Source of the DNA: Saccostrea cucullata
Taxonomy: Eukaryota
Reading direction: 5' to 3'
Assembly: GCF_032062105.1 (NCBI RefSeq)
Contig: NW_026918279.1
Coordinates: 62,001-126,000 of the forward strand
Length of the DNA: 64,000 nt
Position 1 is the first letter of the stretch. Each line of letters begins with the position of its first letter. The position numbers and the translations under genes were made by a program. A model generated the notes under the pieces. It was not told the origin of the DNA. It worked only from the letters and a program-made list of their open reading frames with translations, and did not search any database. This document shows positions 22,001 through 34,805 of this stretch, piece by piece.

Positions 22001-22227
22001 AATAATAAAGAATCAGGAAATGTTTTAGATGAGGTTTTTTTGTTTGTTTTTTTAAGGCAAAACTTAATTATGGTCTTGTCTGTATTATAAACATATGTCA
22101 CTATCTCAACTAAATGCTTATAATTGATATGAGTATGAACTTATTACCCGTAATACTTATAGCACATTTATGACAAGGAATTTTTTTTTATAATATTTTT
22201 ACTTTCAACAAGATATTGTTAAATAGA

Positions 22228-22230
<3 letters not shown>

Positions 22231-22288
<58 letters not shown>
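22231..22288. repeat. (TA)n microsatellite
   Basis: Direct read; further (TA)n tracts at 23938-23982 and 24725-24737. Confidence 0.95.
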
Positions 22289-22292
<4 letters not shown>

Positions 22293-23937
22293 CACAATTT
22301 ACAACAACTCTTAAACTAATATAACTGCCCTAAGTGAAGAAATATTAATATAGAAAGCACAAAGAAATTCACTTTTACATGGATACCCACTTCCGCCCCA
22401 GCCCGGGGTTGAACTCTCGACCTTCGGAATCTGTCTCCTAGCAGTGCAGGAACAGCGCGCTAGACCGCTCGGCTATCTAGGCAAGTCAAAAAACTTGCTT
22501 TCGATGCCGATGGAATTCTCGCGGCGCTGCCCTACACTACACGGTCATTGAGAATAGAAGTGAGATACAGTTATTTGGACATTAGTTTTAACAGAGGATT
22601 GTTACCAATACATGTTGTAATGAAATTAATTATTATTTATAAAGCACAATTTACAACAACTCTTAAACTAATATAACTGCCCTAAGTGAAGAAATATTAA
22701 TATAGAAAGCACAAAGAAATTCACTTTTACATGGATACCCACTTCCGCCCCAGCCCGGGGTTGAACTCTCGACCTTCGGAATCTGTCTCCTAGCAGTGCA
22801 GGAACAGCGCGCTAGACCGCTCGGCTATCTAGGCAAGTCAAAAAACTTGCTTTCGATGCCGATGGAATTCTCGCGGCGCTGCCCTACACTACACGGTCAT
22901 TGAGAATAGAAGTGAGATACAGTTATTTGGACATTAGTTTTAACAGAGGATTGTTACCAATACATGTTGTAATGAAATTAATTATTATTTATAAAGCACA
23001 ATTTACAACAACTCTTAAACTAATATAACTGCCCTAAGTGAAGAAATATTAATATAGAAAGCACAAAGAAATTCACTTTTACATGGATACCCACTTCCGC
23101 CCCAGCCCGGGGTTGAACTCTCGACCTTCGGAATCTGTCTCCTAGCAGTGCAGGAACAGCGCGCTAGACCGCTCGGCTATCTAGGCAAGTCAAAAAACTT
23201 GCTTTCGATGCCGATGGAATTCTTTGTGCTTTCTATATTAATATTTCTTCACTTAGGGCAGTTATATTAGTTCAAGAGTTGTTGTAAATTGTGCTTTATA
23301 AATAATAATTAATTTCATTACAACATGTATTTGTAACAATCCTCTGTTAAAACTAATGTCCAAATAACTGTATCTCACTTCTATTCTCAATGACCGTGTA
23401 GTGTAGGGCAGCGCCGCGAGAATTCCATCGGCATCGAAAGCAAGTTTTTTGACTTGCCTAGATAGCCGAGCGGTCTAGCGCGCTGTTCCTGCACTGCTAG
23501 GAGACAGATTCCGAAGGTCGAGAGTTCAACCCCGGGCTGGGGCGGAAGTGGGTATCCATGTAAAAGTGAATTTCTTTGTGCTTTCTATATTAATATTTCT
23601 TCACTTAGGGCAGTTATATTAGTTTAAGAGTTGTTGTAAATTGTGCTTTATAAATAATAATTAATTTCATTACAACATGTATTGGTAACAATCCTCTGTT
23701 AAAACTAATGTCCAAATAACTGTATCTCACTTCTATTCTCAATGACCGTGTAGTGTAGGGCAGCGCCGCGAGAATTCCATCGGCATCGAAAGCAAGTTTT
23801 TTGACTTGCCTAGATAGCCGAGCGGTCTAGCGCGCTGTTCCTGCACTGCTAGGAGACAGATTCCGAAGGTCGAGAGTTCAACCCCGGGCTGGGGCGGAAG
23901 TGGGTATCCATGTAAAAGTGAATTTCTTTGTGCTTTC

Positions 23938-23940
<3 letters not shown>
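22289..23940. repeat. Tandem + inverted array of a 352-bp unit containing a tRNA-derived segment
   Basis: Units start at 22289, 22641, 22993; inversion at GAATTC ~23217-23222; about two inverted units to 23940; each carries A box TAGCCGAGCGG and B-box-like AGTTCAACCC. Confidence 0.9.
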
Positions 23941-23981
<41 letters not shown>

Positions 23982-23985
<4 letters not shown>

Positions 23986-24725
23986 GGACTCCAAAGTGCG
24001 ATGGGACTCCAAAGTCCGATGGTCTGCGCCAAACCCCGATGGTTTGACACGCCAAAGTCCTATGGCGCAGAAAACAATAAACGTCTATGACGTCATAGTA
24101 CTACTGAGTAAGAATGCGATGCCACGCCATGCCAATAAAAAAATACAAAATATCATAAATACAAGGACTAACCCTCGTCTTTTGGATGTAGGTAAAAAAC
24201 TAAGACTTATCAGTCGAACAGTGAGTATCAACTCTAACCTAACTATCATAGGTAGGTGCAGGACTATTCTAAATCAGCCCAGTAGTGTGCGAGGACTTAC
24301 CTTAAAATCTCTCGGGTGGGCTCGAAGAAACACCTTACTTTTCAAGGACTAACCCTTAACACCCCGGTGGTGTACGAGGAATAACCCTAATACCTCTTGT
24401 GGGTGAAAACAAAAAGCAATATCCGTAAAAACGTATGTGAGACGAATACTGAATCAATGGATTTTGAATGCAGGACAACGTCATGACGTCGGACTAGTGT
24501 GACGTCATAAACGTTAAATGTTCCTCCGCACCATCGGACTTTGGCGTATCAGACCATCGCACTTTAGCGTCGCGCGTCTCATAGGAAATGAGCCATCGGA
24601 CTTTGGCGTGACCATCGGACTTTCGGGTCCGTAAAGACAGCGATCCATCGGGGTTTGGCGCAGGCCATCGGGGTTTGGCGAGACCATCGGACTTTGGCGT
24701 CACCATCGCACTTTAGAGTCTTACA
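23982..24725. mobile_element. Non-autonomous TGT...ACA DNA transposon (Ginger-like) in (TA)n
   Basis: TIR TGTAGGACTCCAAAGTGCGATGG / CCATCGCACTTTAGAGTCTTACA; subterminal CCAAAGTCCGATGG repeats inverted at the two ends. Confidence 0.75.
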
Positions 24726-24858
24726 TATATATATATAAAGCACAAAAAAACCAACAACACTGTATATCCTAAATGTCGGATCTGCCAAGTAGATACAAGG
24801 TCACGGATGGAAATTTATATAAAGCACTAAAAATGACCAACGACACGAACAATAAAAA

Positions 24859-24899
24859 TTGTCAAATTTTCGGGACGCCCTGTCCCTTCCTTAGGACAA
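24859..24899 (-). ncRNA. Minimal type-I hammerhead-like motif in the pseudo-LTR (second copy 26696-26736, +)
   Basis: TTGTC-CTAAGGA-A-GGGAC agggc GTCCC-GAAA-ATTT-GACAA: stems I and II pair; core reads CUAAGGA rather than CUGANGA. Confidence 0.55.
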
Positions 24900-25475
24900 A
24901 GAAAAAAGTTATAAAGTCATAAGAACAAAGGAAAAATAGACACAAAAACAACTAGCACTACTACTAAACACTAGATATTTACATACTTAATTACATGTTG
25001 AATTCGAAATTTTTAAGAACACTAATAAAGAAAGAACTCCGGACCGCTATGAAATGCGTCCGTTCTATCGGGTATACTCGGGTGAAGTGCGATTTACATA
25101 ATTGAACGAATTAATTATGCTAATTAATTACGACAATCAGTAAATCGTACATTGTTTCATTCTCTCAAAATGGCGTAACTTTACGTAATAAAGAATAATC
25201 AAAGAAAAATAAGATGGCAGGGATATTTAAACATATGAATTATGATCCATTATAAATTTTGAAATATTTAAAGACTTATTACCGGGAAAAAATAATTAAC
25301 AAAGGTGAAAGCAATACATAGTTATGTGGGTTGTTCGAGAGTTGGTGACGCAAATTGACTGTACAGTTTACACTAAGTTGAGAGAATAAGCTTGTTTAGT
25401 ATCATCAGGAATTGGGTCTAGTTTACGTTCATTCAGTTTGTTAATACCATTAGGGCGGAATGACTTCAATCTGTG

Positions 25476-26169
25476 ACAGGCAATACATGATAGGCAAAAC
25501 CTATTACGCTACAAGGAGAAAGACACTAGCGGTAGGGTCCCTCTGGTAACCACATATCATCCCGTCCTTAAGAACCTTAGCGGTATCCTTCAAAAGAACC
25601 TACCAATTCTCCATTCAAAGAAACGAATGGCAGAGGTCTTTAAGGAACCCCCATTGGCTGCATACAGACGCCCAAGGAACCTAAAGGACATGGTAGTAAG
25701 AACCAGACTGGACAACCCATTACCTAACGGGGGCTTTAAAACTTGCTCTGACAGAAGATGTCTTCTTTGTAAGCACAGTACTGACACAGACAGTTTTAAC
25801 AGCCCTGTTACAGGCCGCAGCTACAAAATACTAGGAAATTTGTCCTGTCATACTGACAACTGCATTTATCTCATCAGTTGCAAAGTTTGCTCCAAACAGT
25901 ATATTGGTGAAACAGGAGATCTCCGCAGGAGAGTCAATAACCACCGTTCGACCATTAGGACCAAAAAACTCAATGAACCCGTTGGGGAACATTTCAACCT
26001 TGAGGGTCACAAATAGGAGGACATGACAGTAGTGGTGATTGACCATAACCCAAGATGGACAGATGCTCAGAGAAAAAGCAAAGACAAGTTCTGGATGCAC
26101 AGATTGAAGTCATTCCGCCCTAATGGTATTAACAAACTGAATGACTTCACCAGAATGAACGTAAACTAG
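25476..26169 (+). pseudogene. GIY-YIG endonuclease end of the Penelope ORF
   Basis: Reading frame continues past a premature TAG at 26014-26016 (EDMTVVVID...FWMHRLKSFRPNGIN) to TAG at 26167-26169. Confidence 0.8.
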
Positions 26170-26753
26170 ACCCAATTCCTGATGATACTAAACAAGATTA
26201 TTCTCTCAATTTAGTGTAAACTGTACAGTCAATTTGCGTCACCAACTCTCGAACAACCCACATAACTATGTATTGCTTTCACCTTTGTTAATTATTTTTT
26301 CTCGGTAATAAGTCTTTAAATATTTCAAAATTTATAATGGATCATAATTCATATGTTTAAATATCCCTGCCATCTTATTTTTCTTTGATTATTCTTTATT
26401 AAGCAAAGTTACGCCATTTTGAGAGAATGAAACAATGTACGATTTACTGATTGTCGTAATTAATTAGCATAATTAATTCGTTCAATTATGTAAATCGCAC
26501 TTCACCCGAGTATACCCGATAGAACGGACGCATTTCATAGCGGTCCGGATTTCTTTCTTTATTAGTGTTCTTAAAAATTTCGAATTCAACATGTAATTAA
26601 GTATGTAAATATCTAGTGTTTAGTAGTTTAGTAGTAGTGCTAGTTATTTTTGTGTCTATTTTTCCTTTGTTCTTATGACTTTTTAACTTTTTTCTTTGTC
26701 CTAAGGAAGGGACAGGGCGTCTCGAACATTTGACAATTTTTATTTTTCGTGTC

Positions 26754-26910
26754 NNNNNNNNNNNNNNNNNNNNNNNNNNNNNNNNNNNNNNNNNNNNNNN
26801 NNNNNNNNNNNNNNNNNNNNNNNNNNNNNNNNNNNNNNNNNNNNNNNNNNNNNNNNNNNNNNNNNNNNNNNNNNNNNNNNNNNNNNNNNNNNNNNNNNNN
26901 NNNNNNNNNN
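26754..26910. other. Assembly gap (157 N)
   Basis: Direct read. Confidence 1.
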
Positions 26911-29331: not shown

Positions 29332-31235
29332 ATACATCATCAAGTGTCAAAGCATTCTGGTTGATCAAAATTGTCTTCTATTTGTCGATGTCTCCTATAA
29401 CTACCGAAAAAGTTGATAAAGACTGGAAGAATCTAATGAATCAATATTCCTCAATTTGTGGCAGAGACGCTATCTGTGATCAATCTTTGATAGGAACCAC
29501 CACCGACAGGAAAAGCAACGTTTCCTGTCCAAGTTGTAGCTGCGATAGAATGTGTCGGATTCATGGTAACTGTTGCCTTGATATATCGTTCAACACATGC
29601 GTGCAAACCTCGTTCGGTTCTGAAGGGAAACAAAAATTTTACTTTATGAAAAACGACTGCCTCCCAAGTGCTGATAAACAACTTGTAAGGAAGTGTCAAG
29701 AAGCAAACGAGAATAAGAATTTCCTTCGAAGAAACCCTGTTACCTCGAAATCAACTAATATGTCATATAACAATGCTTACTGTGCTCATTGTAATAATGA
29801 ATCTATTTTTGTTCCTTGGGATATTGAAACGAATTGTTCCATTGGTCAAAACGTGTTTTCCACCATTGATGAGGTATGGAAATATTTCCAATCTAAGCAT
29901 TGCTCTTTAAGTTTCATCCCTTCAAATGAAATTCGCCAGAAATTAGAAGTCCCTAAAGTATGTGACTGGAATAAGCATTTCATCGGTGAGTGCAATGCCA
30001 CGGGAAAGCTATCTTCATTTGATTCGACAGTTGAAACTGCTTGTAAGACAAACTATCAGCCTTTTGGCTTGTTTCAAAATCCCTTTTGCCTAATGTGTAA
30101 CATTGCAGATGACTTGTTTGGACCACCAATATCAACTTGTAATGTCACGGGGCAGATTGATTATATTCCTCAGGATTTATATGATGCGTGTATCAACGAT
30201 ACTGTAGAAGCATTACAATATCCATATAAAAACAAATATTGCAAAGAATGTAATTTAGTCAAAACAGGACGAACCGATATAAAGTTGCAAGACGCGACAT
30301 TGTCTATTAATATTTACAACAGACCAATGACATCAAACATGCATGGGCAATCAATTCCTGGAAAACTCACTTATGAATCTGAGTTTAGGGTTAGCAATGT
30401 AAATTTTTCCTTTGACTCCTCGATATCAATCCGTTTATATAACATAAACAGTTTTTATCAAGCATATACTGAAGATTTCGGCTGGTTTTTAAAAAGGAAA
30501 TGGTGTCGAAGAGCCAGGTCCCATATTGATGCCGATGCAGAATATTCAGATGATAAACATTCATATCTTCCTTGTTCATGTACCTCTGAGTGCAACAATA
30601 CCAACAACTGTTGTGAAGATCCAAAGTATAATATAATTATGAAGCAAGTCAACAAATGGTCATGTGTGGATGTATCGTACCCGCCAATTCCAGATTTTCA
30701 CCAGCATTCTTATTTCATGATAAGTAAATGCTCAAAGGCTTACAATAACACTGAAATCAAGAATCTTTGTGAAAATGACAATAAACATTATCTTAGTCTA
30801 ATTCCAGTCACAGATAAAGATACGTCGGTTACGTACAAAAATTATTTTTGTTTTCTTTGTGTTGTACCAGATAGCAACTATATTCAAAACCACACATACC
30901 TAGTGCCATGGACAATTTCCTTGGCATGTCCCAAAATTTGGAATTTTAAACGTGAAGCCAGCTTGGAGCTTATCATACAAAACGTTGACTCTAGGAATTG
31001 TCAGCTAAATTTTCAGCCATCCCTTTCTTTTCCACCCGATTGTGTCTTTTCTGTAGCTGGAAGTCTGTACTGTTCACTATGTGATCAAGCAAGAACGACT
31101 GTAGGTGGAAGATATGAACTTACTAATTATCGTACAATATTCTCGTTATTTGAAAACACAGATGAGATAGACTTAGAAAAACCTAAAGATCCTAACGCAA
31201 AATGTCAAGATAATGAATTTTTCGACATTTTCAAG
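29332..31235 (+). CDS. Family-B (Methuselah/adhesion-like) GPCR paralog B, ectodomain exon
   Basis: TTTTTAG acceptor at 29331; two SMB-like Cys modules (CSCDRMCRIHGNCCLD, CSCTSECNNTNNCCED); AAG|GTAACT donor, intron 31236-31410. Confidence 0.87.
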
Positions 31236-31410
31236 GTAACTGTATAGCTACATGTATGCCATATTTATACCGTTTCTCTCTATGTGTTTGATTATTCTAT
31301 AATTATTTACAAACACTTACATTCTGTATGGGTTTCAGTGCCTCATTTACATTTAATGTTTCTGTTTGTTTCAATTTTCATATGATCAATTTTTTTTTGT
31401 TTACTTTAAG

Positions 31411-33072
31411 GGAAAATGTCGACAGCTTTTCTGTTTCCCTGGCAAAACCCTTGTGAATGGGAAGTGTTATCCACTGATTTCATTCCGATCTCCTTTAATT
31501 TACAACATAGCCTTTAAAGCAAGTCTTCGAGTACACCAAGGCTATATGCAGATGAACCTTGACCAAGTAATTCAAACAATGATTTCCTTCTTGATAGAGG
31601 ATCTTCACAATGGAACCGATCTAAGTGTTAACATTTTGGAATATCGACAGCGCTACAGAAGAATGTGTGAAGATACAATTATGGTGCTTGATTCAAATCC
31701 ACTAGAGCTCAGCATCTTTATCAAAATAATCATACAAAGCAAGAATAATGTGAAAGATCGAAATGAAATCGAACAAAGTCTTTATAACGCTTGTACGAAG
31801 ACTGGATCCTTCCAAAACTTTTCGTTGGAATTTTCAGAGGATGTAAAAGCTTGGTTTCTACCAATCCAAGAGAAAACATTACCGTTCCTCCAATTATGTG
31901 ATACACACTATCAGTCTTTTCGCCAATACAGCAATAACCCAGGTATTGATATCACCAAGCTTTTGTTTTGTCCGCAACTGTCATTAACAAACGAAGAGTG
32001 TCAGATTTCGCATGATGGACTACAGGTATATGTTTCTTCTTTGAATCGGACATTCTTTTATAATGAATTCTCCAGAGGTGAAAACAATACGGTACGAATA
32101 TGTGCCTCTGACTATACACCTACGAAACAATCTAATCAAACTCAGTCAGGATCTGGGGAACATTCAGAACATTTCTTTCTTGAAGTATTGACAATTCTAA
32201 CAACTTGCATATCCATTGTTTCTCTAGTTATTACTTTCATTGTCTATTCCATTCTCAAAAAGCTTCGCACTATCCCAGGTCAAAATTTAATGTGTTTTGT
32301 AGGATCACTGTTCTTTGCTCAACTATTTTTACTCTTTAAAGGTGTGTTCGAAGATAACAAGATAGCATGTAACGTGGTTGGGATATTCATTTACTACTTT
32401 TGGCTTTCTACATTTACATGTGCGAGTGTTTGTTCTTTACATATGTTTCGTGTGTTTGTGTGTGATGCTCGATTTTATGACAAAAATCTTTGTAATCATA
32501 CCATCATATTATACTCGCTTTATGCATTTCTGGTTCCTGTATTATGTATTTGCCTAACCATTGGAATTCATATGCATCTCTCGCAATCTTCTCTGACAGG
32601 GTTTGGGGGAAGTTCTTGTTTTATTGACGACAAGGACACCCAACTTTACAGCTTTATTCTTCCCATCTCCATTATTTGCTTCATAAACTTTATTTTGTTT
32701 TCTATAACATTTTATAAAATCCACAGTGCTCCTACTATTGAAAATACACAATGTCGAAACGATCTTAGAATTTATTTTAAGCTTTTTCTTCTGACTGGTA
32801 CAGCATGGGTTTTTCAGATCATAGATGGACTGTTCCCTGTATCACCCTTTTCATACCTGGTAACAGTTATAAATGGCTCACAGGGGGTGTATATTATGAT
32901 TTCTTTTGTCTTTACTCACCGCGTCAAACTCATGTTTGTGGAGTTGGGTTGGTTTGATAAACTGGGTCTTCGAAATGGAAAGAAATCACAGAGCAGTGGG
33001 GAGACAAAACTAACCCATAGAAGTGCAGCACCATCAGAGCTTGCTAGAATTTATCAACCATGTTCAACTTAA
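31411..33072 (+). CDS. Family-B GPCR paralog B, stalk + 7TM exon
   Basis: Same acceptor, length and 7TM motifs as 1567-3228; about 1201 aa in total if the 27257 exon is used. Confidence 0.88.
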   Translation, partial: GKCRQLFCFPGKTLVNGKCYPLISFRSPLIYNIAFKASLRVHQGYMQMNLDQVIQTMISFLIEDLHNGTDLSVNILEYRQRYRRMCEDTIMVLDSNPLELSIFIKIIIQSKNNVKDRNEIEQSLYNACTKTGSFQNFSLEFSEDVKAWFLPIQEKTLPFLQLCDTHYQSFRQYSNNPGIDITKLLFCPQLSLTNEECQISHDGLQVYVSSLNRTFFYNEFSRGENNTVRICASDYTPTKQSNQTQSGSGEHSEHFFLEVLTILTTCISIVSLVITFIVYSILKKLRTIPGQNLMCFVGSLFFAQLFLLFKGVFEDNKIACNVVGIFIYYFWLSTFTCASVCSLHMFRVFVCDARFYDKNLCNHTIILYSLYAFLVPVLCICLTIGIHMHLSQSSLTGFGGSSCFIDDKDTQLYSFILPISIICFINFILFSITFYKIHSAPTIENTQCRNDLRIYFKLFLLTGTAWVFQIIDGLFPVSPFSYLVTVINGSQGVYIMISFVFTHRVKLMFVELGWFDKLGLRNGKKSQSSGETKLTHRSAAPSELARIYQPCST

Positions 33073-34123: not shown

Positions 34124-34703
34124 TATTTGAAAAAAAATGTATCCAAATTTGGAATTCGACTCATTAGCTTATAGAGATTGGTCCATTATACATAAGAGGG
34201 GTTCTCAAAAAATTCCTGGAGAGGATCATATGACTTAAAACTCCTTGAGATACAAGAAAACATTTATAACATTTACTTGACATTATCTTTTTCTGTCCAC
34301 AGCATAAACTCTTAAGTATGCAGCTCATCTTTGAATAGTTTAAAAGTTTTACGTATAAATTTCAATAAAGTGAAACCTAAAATTACCTATTTCTCATGAC
34401 CAGGAATTTGTTTGATGAACTGTTATAAAGTTAACACTATTCTAAGGCACTCGCTTTATTGCCTTAGTTTTTCTAGTTAGATCTTACAATAAATTCGGTA
34501 AAGTGATCTAAAAAAAATTCTGGTGAATGAAGCCAGAATTGGGTTTGTTTTGGCTTTTTGTCACAATGTATAATGTTTCTATTGAAATTTTAATATAGAA
34601 TTTGAGAAATTAAAGAGGCCAGCAAAAGACAAAGACTTTTTTGTCTAACATCCTTCTCGATACTTTTTACTCATATGGCGGGCATCTGGGTTCGATCGCC
34701 GGT

Positions 34704-34805
34704 GGCCAGATAGCTCAGTTAATGGTAGAGCACCTGAGATCTAGGGGGCCCGGGTTCGATTCCAGGTCTGGTCTTCTGCATACCGGTATTTCTCCTCTCC
34801 CGTTA
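34704..34805 (+). mobile_element. tRNA-derived SINE head
   Basis: A box TAGCTCAGTTAATGG and B box GGTTCGATTCC, no proper anticodon arm; degenerate relatives on - at ~48835-48910 and ~49035-49100. Confidence 0.65.

Follow-up and report, generated by a model that had tools for sequence, protein, structure and literature searches.

How a short non-coding repeat comes to be laid down as two opposed tandem blocks inside a dinucleotide microsatellite, and by which enzyme, is the question raised by a locus of the oyster Saccostrea cucullata. The stretch of DNA analysed here, referred to as the window, comprises 64,000 nucleotides (contig NW_026918279.1, positions 62,001 to 126,000 of the forward strand; coordinates below are those of the window unless a locus is named), and it carries at 22290-23937 a non-coding 352-bp repeat which runs for 2.65 units one way and for 2.05 units the opposite way. 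A 5'-truncated inverted pair of a Penelope-like element (PLE) adjoins the repeat cluster at 24738-26753. The initial annotation of this DNA had proposed the repeat as a candidate tRNA-headed short interspersed element (SINE) that is transcribed by RNA polymerase III (Pol III) and uses Penelope reverse transcriptase (RT) and GIY-YIG machinery. The reading for which the present work argues, and which is considered likely, is that the 352-bp unit is a non-coding, non-autonomous retroelement copied into (TA)n by the RT and GIY-YIG endonuclease (EN) of a co-resident active PLE of the Neptune type.

Tandem Repeats Finder (TRF) reports a period of 352 for both blocks of the array, with 2.7 copies in the left block (22282-23223) and 2.1 copies in the right block (23220-23942), 99% matches and no indels in each, and an inverted-repeat search finds the two blocks to be complementary at 99-100% over up to 734 nt. 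No more than 2 bases distinguish the units, and the array contains no noteworthy open reading frame (ORF). The left arm (22290-23223, minus strand, 2.65 units) has its 3' end leftward at the position called site B in what follows (GTGCTTTA, unit 77-84), and it is the bearer of the 64-nt “tail” discussed below; the left outer boundary reads (TA)29 followed by AAAGCAC at 22290, which in the sense of the element is GTGCTTTA. The right arm (23217-23937, plus strand, 2.05 units) has its 3' end at site A (GTGCTTTC, 23930-23937), which is followed by (TA)22. The target microsatellite flanks the array on the left at 22231-22289 (TRF period 2, 29.5 copies, 100% matches) and on the right at 23938-23985 (TRF period 2, 22.5 copies). 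The arms meet head to head at 23217-23223 in a 7-nt overlap, GAATTCT, which is common to both and which places their 5' ends at unit 205 and unit 2. The arrangement described from the letters of the sequence, namely about 2.6 plus about 2 units that flip at a microhomology near 23217 and run out through GTGCTTT(A/C) into (TA)n at both ends, is borne out in each of these respects.

Insertion anatomy across the genome

A search of the 1.17-Gb genome for the 352-bp unit gave 1257 first-look candidates, of which at least 232 are scored matches with an identity of 93-100%. Twenty further places were retrieved, two of which (L045 and L048) are one locus, and the base-level reading reported here covered about 220 kb of genome at the resulting 19 distinct loci beyond the window. 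The locus that was retrieved twice lies on contigs C15022 and C11934 with the same flanks in reverse orientation, and the two contigs are probably haplotigs or the products of a recent duplication.

The (TA)n setting is found at all 20 retrieved places as well as in the window, a microsatellite bias like that of Neptune and Naiad elements, and the two-armed layout at 12 of the 19 distinct loci, again in addition to the window. The order of the arms in the two-armed loci is minus then plus, with the 3' ends outward, in 12 cases out of 12, and the same order is seen in every contig with both orientations among the genome matches listed. All outer 3' ends lie at unit 19 (site A, GTGCTTTC then TATA) or at unit 83 (site B, GTGCTTTA then TATA), and both sites have the form GTGCTTT(C/A) + TATA. 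The inner 5' ends are dispersed from unit 2 to unit 342, the joints between arms consist of overlaps of 1-17 nt or of short fillers, and the length of an arm varies from 0.3 to about 10 units across loci. Single-armed arrays in which the truncated 5' end lies directly against (TA)n are present at L031, L039, L041, L042, L046 and L049, and of the single-armed arrays five stop at A and one stops at B. The same layout is shared by subfamilies whose periods are 348-352 bp. The combination of fixed 3' ends, random 5' ends and microhomology joints is the signature of target-primed reverse transcription, started in this case from both sides of a break. PLE insertions are characterised by frequent 5' truncation behind a fixed 3' end, by head-to-tail partial tandems and by a neighbouring truncated copy in inverted orientation, and the repeat displays each of these.

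At L037, L040, L044 and L047, locus-specific substitutions are common to all units of both arms, a pattern which fits a single event from a single template species; because the locus-specific variants run through all units, the tandem structure appears to have been made at insertion. The one spot that does vary inside arrays is the length of the T-run of the unit, which is T6 in 75 units, T7 in 8, T8 in 2 and T5 in 2 (12 of 87 not T6). The picture that emerges is not one of single copies with poly(A) or long interspersed element (LINE) tails placed outside (TA)n, as all the retrieved copies are in (TA)n. It is also not one of an assembly chimera, as the same anatomy recurs at 19 other distinct loci. 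The microsatellites are in some cases used repeatedly: at L036:4443-6093, L043:2600-2680 and L047:5441-5692, PLE arms and further repeat arrays lie within the same (TA)n tract.

The neighbouring Penelope-like element and the doubled 3' terminus

The left arm of the PLE pair (24738-25434, minus strand) consists of 3' untranslated region (UTR) only, with its 3' end at 24738 (site 2, ...GGTTTTTTTGTGCTT + (TA)n) and an internal site 1 motif at 24820-24833. The right arm (25435-26753, plus strand) contains the end of the RT, a CX4CxxC linker, the GIY-YIG domain (Pfam GIY-YIG at 3e-7 in the translation) and the 3' UTR, carries one in-frame stop at 26014-26016 within the GIY-YIG endonuclease, and runs into a stretch of N at 26754-26910. 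The 3' UTR of the PLE in the window is about 700 nt long and the element ends ...GTGCTT(TA)n; the adjacent Neptune-like element was said to have the same inverted-arm layout and the same terminus as the repeat, and the anatomy of 24738-26753 confirms it.

Elsewhere in the genome, the PLE family yields 1668 first-look candidates, its copies are 97-98% identical, and minus-then-plus pairs in (TA)n are found again. One copy has an open stretch of 894 codons whose last 729 residues comprise RVT_1 (3e-10) and then GIY-YIG (1e-7), with the linker FKTCSDRRCLLC upstream of GIY-YIG. The nearest named relatives are oyster proteins, from Crassostrea virginica (86%), Saccostrea (partial, 88-93%) and Ostrea edulis (77%), which agrees with an ostreid oyster as host. 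A C-terminal EN together with the linker motif defines the Neptune/Nematis type (PMC8557442), and by these two features the partner is predicted to be of that type. It agrees with the scheme of a Neptune-type PLE, in which an RT is followed by a C-terminal GIY-YIG EN, with a CX2-5CxxC linker and a CCHH motif. To judge from its sequences, the family is abundant, young and currently active.

The PLE also carries a minimal hammerhead-type core, which in the window lies at 24859-24899 (minus strand) and, as a second copy, at 26695-26737 (plus strand); both of these copies are mutated by a G5-to-A change (CUAAGGA for CUGAGGA). An intact core is present in other copies of the PLE (L053/L054, C2999), about 45 nt upstream of the first 3' terminus, and reads UUGUC-CUGAGGA-A-GGGAC-AGGGC-GUCCC-GAAA-AU-UU-GACAA, in which helices I and II are each 5 bp long, helix II has G10.1-C11.1, an A is bulged, and GAAA-AU-UU is present. 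The core is kept in the Ostrea edulis relative (L058:9560-9660) with another loop and another N7. Minimal hammerheads of PLEs are reported to have a short helix I, a base that bulges out ahead of helix II, G10.1-C11.1 and a 15.2-16.2 that is palindromic (PMC4209133), and as it matches these traits the core is a predicted minimal hammerhead; Rfam makes no call of it.

The repeat and the PLE also have the pattern of their 3' termini in common. The 3' end of the PLE lies at either of two positions some 80 nt from each other, each of the form (A/T)GTGCTTT + TATA: three PLE arms stop at ...GTCGTTGGTCATTTTTAGTGCTTTA and then (TA)n, and three, including the left arm in the window, stop at ...GTGTTGTTGGTTTTTT(A/T)GTGCTT and then (TA)n. 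When six termini are aligned (the two sites of the unit, the two sites of the PLE and two on a chromosome of Ostrea edulis), T-GTGCTTT-(A/C)-TA does not vary, and five of the six have GTTG(G/T) with a T-rich spacer upstream of the motif. Genome-wide, GTGCTTTM(TA)6 occurs 1284 times, as against 6 times for the reversed control (one entry of this list, inside the N stretch at 26754-26910 of the window, was not used). A related PLE of Ostrea edulis is 88-91% identical over the last ~90 nt and 74-76% identical over the ORF, and this better conservation of the 3' end suggests constraint on a 3' cis-element; the Logan contig L057, which stops at the ORF, offers no 3' end for the comparison. On the Ostrea edulis chromosome OX387709.1, at L058:9657-9702, a single (TA)n tract lies between two different, opposed elements, both of which end in T-rich-GTGCTTTA; this indicates that the terminus motif and the target are common to several families across oyster genera.

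The two sites appear not to be chosen independently. Of the 12 independent two-armed repeat loci, 11 combine an arm that stops at A with an arm that stops at B, and the exception, L043, is A/A and is one of two with a near-symmetric junction; under independent choice of ends at the overall usage of A and B, the chance of at least 11 mixed loci in 12 is about 0.002 by our own calculation. The first 100 entries of the coordinate-only list of GTGCTTTM(TA)6 matches add nine further minus-then-plus pairs with a C-type end, all of which are mixed and none of which is C/C. The PLE itself has the one-sided tail at both of its two readable two-armed loci, C121 and C2999. The repeat has a tail of 64 nt, the PLE one of about 80 nt. 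A short tail at one end only is a known PLE feature, for which the published length is 30-40 bp (PMC8557442); to this the present loci add that the tail is closed by the terminus motif a second time. The phase of the (TA)n primer was considered as a cause of the A/B pairing and was discarded, as inspection finds either phase to be tolerated at both sites.

The tRNA-like module, the RNA and the template

Each unit contains a tRNA-derived segment, GCCTAGATAGCCGAGCGGTCTAGCGCGCTG...AGTTCAACCCC, represented in one unit by 23808-23899 (plus strand), repeated at 23456-23547 and present on the minus strand in the left arm. A motif scan finds in every unit a box A-like TAGCCGAGCGG with 1 mismatch and a box B-like AGTTCAACCCC with 2 mismatches, 60 nt apart (23815-23825 and 23875-23885 in the unit just given). 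The segment is preceded by the hairpin GCAAGT-TTTTTTG-ACTTGC (23792-23809, plus strand; also 23440-23457), whose loop holds T6 at 23797-23802. This T6, which had already been pointed out as a TTTTTT before the head, lies 5 nt upstream of GCCTAGATAGCC at the tRNA-like start in every unit; it is the single run of four or more T in the unit and stands 13 nt upstream of box A. The tRNA-derived segment forms half of a long imperfect hairpin with the 50 nt upstream of it, in which the tRNA-like 5' half is paired, around the T6 hairpin, to a partial and inverted copy of itself, and the fold of the unit RNA has z = -3.9 and -3.3 relative to shuffles for the two strands. The likeness to a tRNA is one of sequence motifs only: Rfam gives no tRNA match on 131 nt even at E<=10, and ARAGORN reports nothing at default and a poor cloverleaf only at 80% of threshold, so that the tRNA-Leu/Ser-like head that had been proposed is not detected as a fold. 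In diverged relatives the head is the best-conserved part. At L040:2171-2259 (minus strand) a diverged element, 81% identical over the head only, starts exactly at GCCTAGATAGCC and continues into a different body, which suggests a wider family built on the head.

Since the copies are multi-unit, the T6 is internal and no 5' ends lie at the Pol III start (0 of about 30 arm 5' ends fall within 15 nt of unit 237-242, the predicted tRNA start being unit 242), the repeat stands outside the definition of a SINE, according to which a copy is one Pol III transcript. The proposal of a Pol III tRNA-headed SINE is therefore retained in part: the boxes A and B and the T6 are present, and a classical SINE, with a tRNA fold and 5' ends at the Pol III start, is not supported. 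What the tRNA-derived segment records is ancestry; it may retain a part in driving or processing transcription, which could be by Pol III, but the ends of the copies are not set by it. There is one solitary copy, at L040:5439-5798 (minus strand), which is 1.03 units long, 18% diverged, outside (TA)n and single instead of tandem. The T-run/GACTT segment contains its two ends (from unit 230 to unit 241 of the following round), and it is without close relatives elsewhere, its best other matches being 82% identical and located in tandem arrays; this single case hints at an older linear form. The copy was also considered as a hint of RNase P action, on the ground that it ended exactly at the tRNA 5' end, but proper alignment, which gives the length and ends just stated, makes it ambiguous in this respect.

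The repeat is present in RNA libraries. In an oligo-dT library of raw reads it is matched by 260 of 12.8 million records, with the strands about equal; the reads are continuous across the boundary between T6 and head, 40 of them span a unit-to-unit joint, and no pile-up of read starts or ends was reported among the 260 matching records. For three metatranscriptome runs of this organism with random priming, the word depth summed over contigs is at least 10^5 (not normalised) and peaks over the tRNA-derived segment. Unit-to-unit joints, which a unit-length circular RNA would give, are found in the contigs of the three runs as well as in the 40 raw reads, and tandem transcripts would give the same joints. 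The random-primed contigs total about one tenth of the genome size, which makes DNA carry-over an unlikely source of the depth. Scarcity in poly(A)-selected RNA together with abundance in total RNA would fit a non-polyadenylated RNA, with the depths being un-normalised.

The anatomy of the insertions, its recurrence across the genome, the terminus logic common to repeat and PLE and the occurrence of the repeat in RNA are direct observations, and it is from the patterns in these sequences that we infer the PLE enzyme as the copier, which of the two priming events comes first and what kind of template is used. The proposed process would begin with a break made by the endonuclease in a (TA)n tract, after which each DNA 3' end would prime reverse transcription on the repeat RNA at GUGCUUU(C/A) followed by a UA-rich run. 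One arm would begin at the upstream site A and the other 64 nt downstream at B, which would produce the one-sided tail; the first strand may prime at the upstream site and the second DNA end then on the still-free downstream RNA. Synthesis would cross several units of one template species and halt at arbitrary points, and the two cDNA ends would finally be joined by short microhomology to give the “<<< >>>” arrays. Two variants of this scheme were tried and rejected: twin priming on one RNA, with the first cDNA reaching the second primer, as the 5' end of an arm is not found at the other arm's priming site, and snap-back synthesis of the second arm as a general route, as the junctions are asymmetric except at L034 and L043 and the arm lengths differ.

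Because arms reach about 10 units with T6 in each, one round of copying from a lone Pol III monomer cannot account for them. The template would instead be a long multimeric transcript or else a unit-length RNA read repeatedly, either in circular form or by jumps from end to end, and the homogeneity seen within loci agrees with both kinds of template. The retention of long arrays despite pervasive 5' truncation is an argument that favours reiterative copying, and the variation in T-run length fits a template jump point and equally fits plain slippage. A further suggestion, to which only a small probability is assigned, is that the tRNA module substitutes for a hammerhead, in that the host tRNA machinery would cut or measure the RNA to unit length and the Penelope enzyme would then copy it round and round; Pol III might start after the T6 and stop in it, or a cut by RNase P/Z might be followed by a host ligase, and the RNA could be circular. 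If true, the repeat would be a protein-processed, ribozyme-free counterpart of retrozymes, and a natural minimal template for the telomerase-related RT of PLEs, including priming at two sites.

Several considerations weigh against copying by the PLE enzyme as set out above. The similarity between the 3' ends of unit and PLE is limited to the short motif and its doubling, and a full local alignment of the last 330 nt of the PLE with a dimer of the unit, while collinear across both motifs, reaches a score of only z ~1.7 over shuffles; a closer partner family may exist, or the likeness of the termini may be convergent. No chimeric insertion of repeat and PLE was found among the loci read. The RNA evidence is indirect, given the small number of oligo-dT reads and contig depths that do not allow normalisation, and mobilisation is proposed on the basis of anatomy. 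The use of Penelope RT/GIY-YIG machinery, which the initial annotation had advanced, is nevertheless well supported by the shared target, the layout, the doubled terminus, the one-sided tail, the 5' truncation and the recent activity.

Of the other explanations, the one with the strongest claim is that the repeat is a true Pol III SINE whose transcript starts just after T6 and stops in the T6 of the next unit, the monomer being copied reiteratively by the PLE enzyme through jumps or as a circle. This is possible but doubtful. The box A-like and box B-like motifs with their 60-nt spacing, the lone T6 upstream of box A and the T-run as the one spot that varies inside arrays (T5-T8) are what would be expected, but simple slippage would also vary the T-run, the tRNA fold is undetected, and not one of the arm 5' ends is placed at the start that this transcript would have. 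The conservation of the head in diverged relatives and its attachment to another body at L040:2171-2259 likewise speak for it, as do the peak of RNA depth over the head and the rarity of the repeat in the oligo-dT library beside its great depth in the random-primed ones; against this, reads and contigs cross the boundary between T6 and head, and the start or end pile-up was not reported. Arrays of up to about 10 units would be easier to keep by reiterative copying than via transcripts of 5'-truncated arrays, but multimeric transcripts from source arrays that are themselves homogeneous would yield homogeneous arrays just as well.

Two explanations remain. That the repeat is satellite DNA which spreads at the DNA level, through extrachromosomal circles, rolling circles or a Helitron/Helentron, and enters (TA)n by microhomology, would agree with the TA-rich sequence that follows both ends and with the short satellite arrays carried by Helentrons for which oyster genomes are known (PMC7492417 and PMC8268682). 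The ends, however, lie only at the two GTGCTTT sites and never at other TA-rich stretches such as TTATATTAG, the asymmetric 5'-TC...CTRR-3' end of Helitrons is lacking, and the palindrome with its 3' ends outward, its variable centres and the same termini on an element with RT and GIY-YIG points to target-primed reverse transcription, so that this explanation is highly improbable. Still less credit is due to an assembly chimera of near-identical copies at this locus: the units are near-identical (2 differences at most) and a stretch of N lies 2.8 kb away, but the architecture recurs at 19 other distinct loci, where junctions and arm lengths differ and the flanks are unique, and unit-to-unit joints are seen in independent read sets.

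Relation to known systems and significance

Metazoan non-LTR retrozymes form dispersed tandem arrays of units of about 170-400 nt, from dimers to large multimers (PMC7229834; bioRxiv 10.64898/2026.07.22.740005); they are regarded as non-autonomous derivatives of PLEs, and the mussel monomer is 353 nt long (same sources). The oyster repeat resembles them in being non-coding and AT-rich, in its strongly self-paired RNA which is abundant in total RNA, and in its dispersed tandem arrays. Retrozymes are defined, however, by a type I hammerhead in every unit, whereas the oyster unit is without one and has a tRNA-derived segment: no CUGANGA core occurs on either strand of the unit, and Rfam finds no ribozyme at E<=5 over 22200-24000. 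The targeting of (TA)n and the back-to-back arms belong to the oyster repeat and lie outside the description of retrozymes consulted. A second comparison is with the non-autonomous Chlamys PLEs of Chlamydomonas, for example MRC1, which are non-coding PLE passengers and resemble the autonomous family at the 3' end (PMC8557442). They share with the oyster repeat pseudo-LTRs, multicopy head-to-tail insertions, a bias towards microsatellites and the absence of canonical hammerheads, but their partner is an N-terminal-EN PLE of green algae and their target is (CA)n or (C)n, whereas the oyster repeat has a C-terminal-EN partner with a CX4CxxC linker, a (TA)n target and a tRNA-derived module in the passenger.

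The likeness to SINE2 elements, the tRNA-derived SINEs that LINEs mobilise, lies in the shortness and non-coding nature of the unit, in the box A/B-like motifs from the 5' half of a class II (Leu/Ser-type) tRNA and in the proposed dependence on a retrotransposon enzyme through a 3' cis-element, and the difference lies in copies that are multi-unit, with an internal terminator, no Pol III-start 5' end and no poly(A) or LINE tail, and in a partner that is a PLE. In the L1 twin priming that Ostertag and Kazazian are said to have described in 2001, both 3' ends of the broken target reportedly prime cDNA and an inverted segment is joined by microhomology. The oyster arrays likewise have an inverted segment, probably produced from both target ends, and a microhomology joint, but priming for the second time would take place at a defined motif, 64-80 nt downstream of the first, instead of a random internal position, and both arms can be many units long. 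No PLE-mobilised tRNA-SINE was found in the literature searched (a limited search), and no description of the 352-bp repeat was found in papers on oyster satellitomes, which is not proof of absence. The partnership of SINE and PLE had been presented as unusual; with non-autonomous PLE passengers already known in the form of hammerhead retrozymes and of Chlamys MRC1, it is less so. The oyster family works like the known PLE passengers and differs from them by having no ribozyme, by the tRNA-derived module and by the clear back-to-back, one-tailed signature.

The surroundings of the cluster include several further features. Between the two (TA)n tracts that separate the repeat from the PLE sits an unrelated 737-bp element (23986-24722) which resembles a MITE (miniature inverted-repeat transposable element), with terminal inverted repeats of about 21 nt (TAGGACTCCAAAGTGCGATGG), arrays of 18-20-nt subterminal repeats and (TA)n on both sides. 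It has about 948 first-look candidates in the genome with constant ends and 84-92% identity, which makes it older than the two retroelement insertions beside it. The only match to a tRNA model in the window is at 34688-34776 (Rfam tRNA, 38 bits), called by ARAGORN as a tRNA-Ile(AAT) whose D-loop has an unusual insertion. The stretch 29361-33072, downstream of the cluster, contains open stretches of 628 and 568 codons, the second with a secretin-family 7TM domain (Pfam 7tm_2, 6.5e-14), and probably marks a host receptor gene.

One practical consequence concerns genome annotation, in which such arrays will be misfiled as satellites or as SINEs. There is, to our knowledge, no in vitro system for PLE integration. 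The integration process is described as undefined, including the origin of tandem and inverted copies, one-sided tails and the preference for microsatellites (PMC8557442). A 352-nt passenger that carries all of these PLE signatures, and that is small, young and abundant with two clear priming sites, could serve as a biochemical substrate. That tandem arrays like those of retrozymes can be built without any ribozyme bears, finally, on whether hammerheads are needed for the propagation of PLEs or merely ride along.

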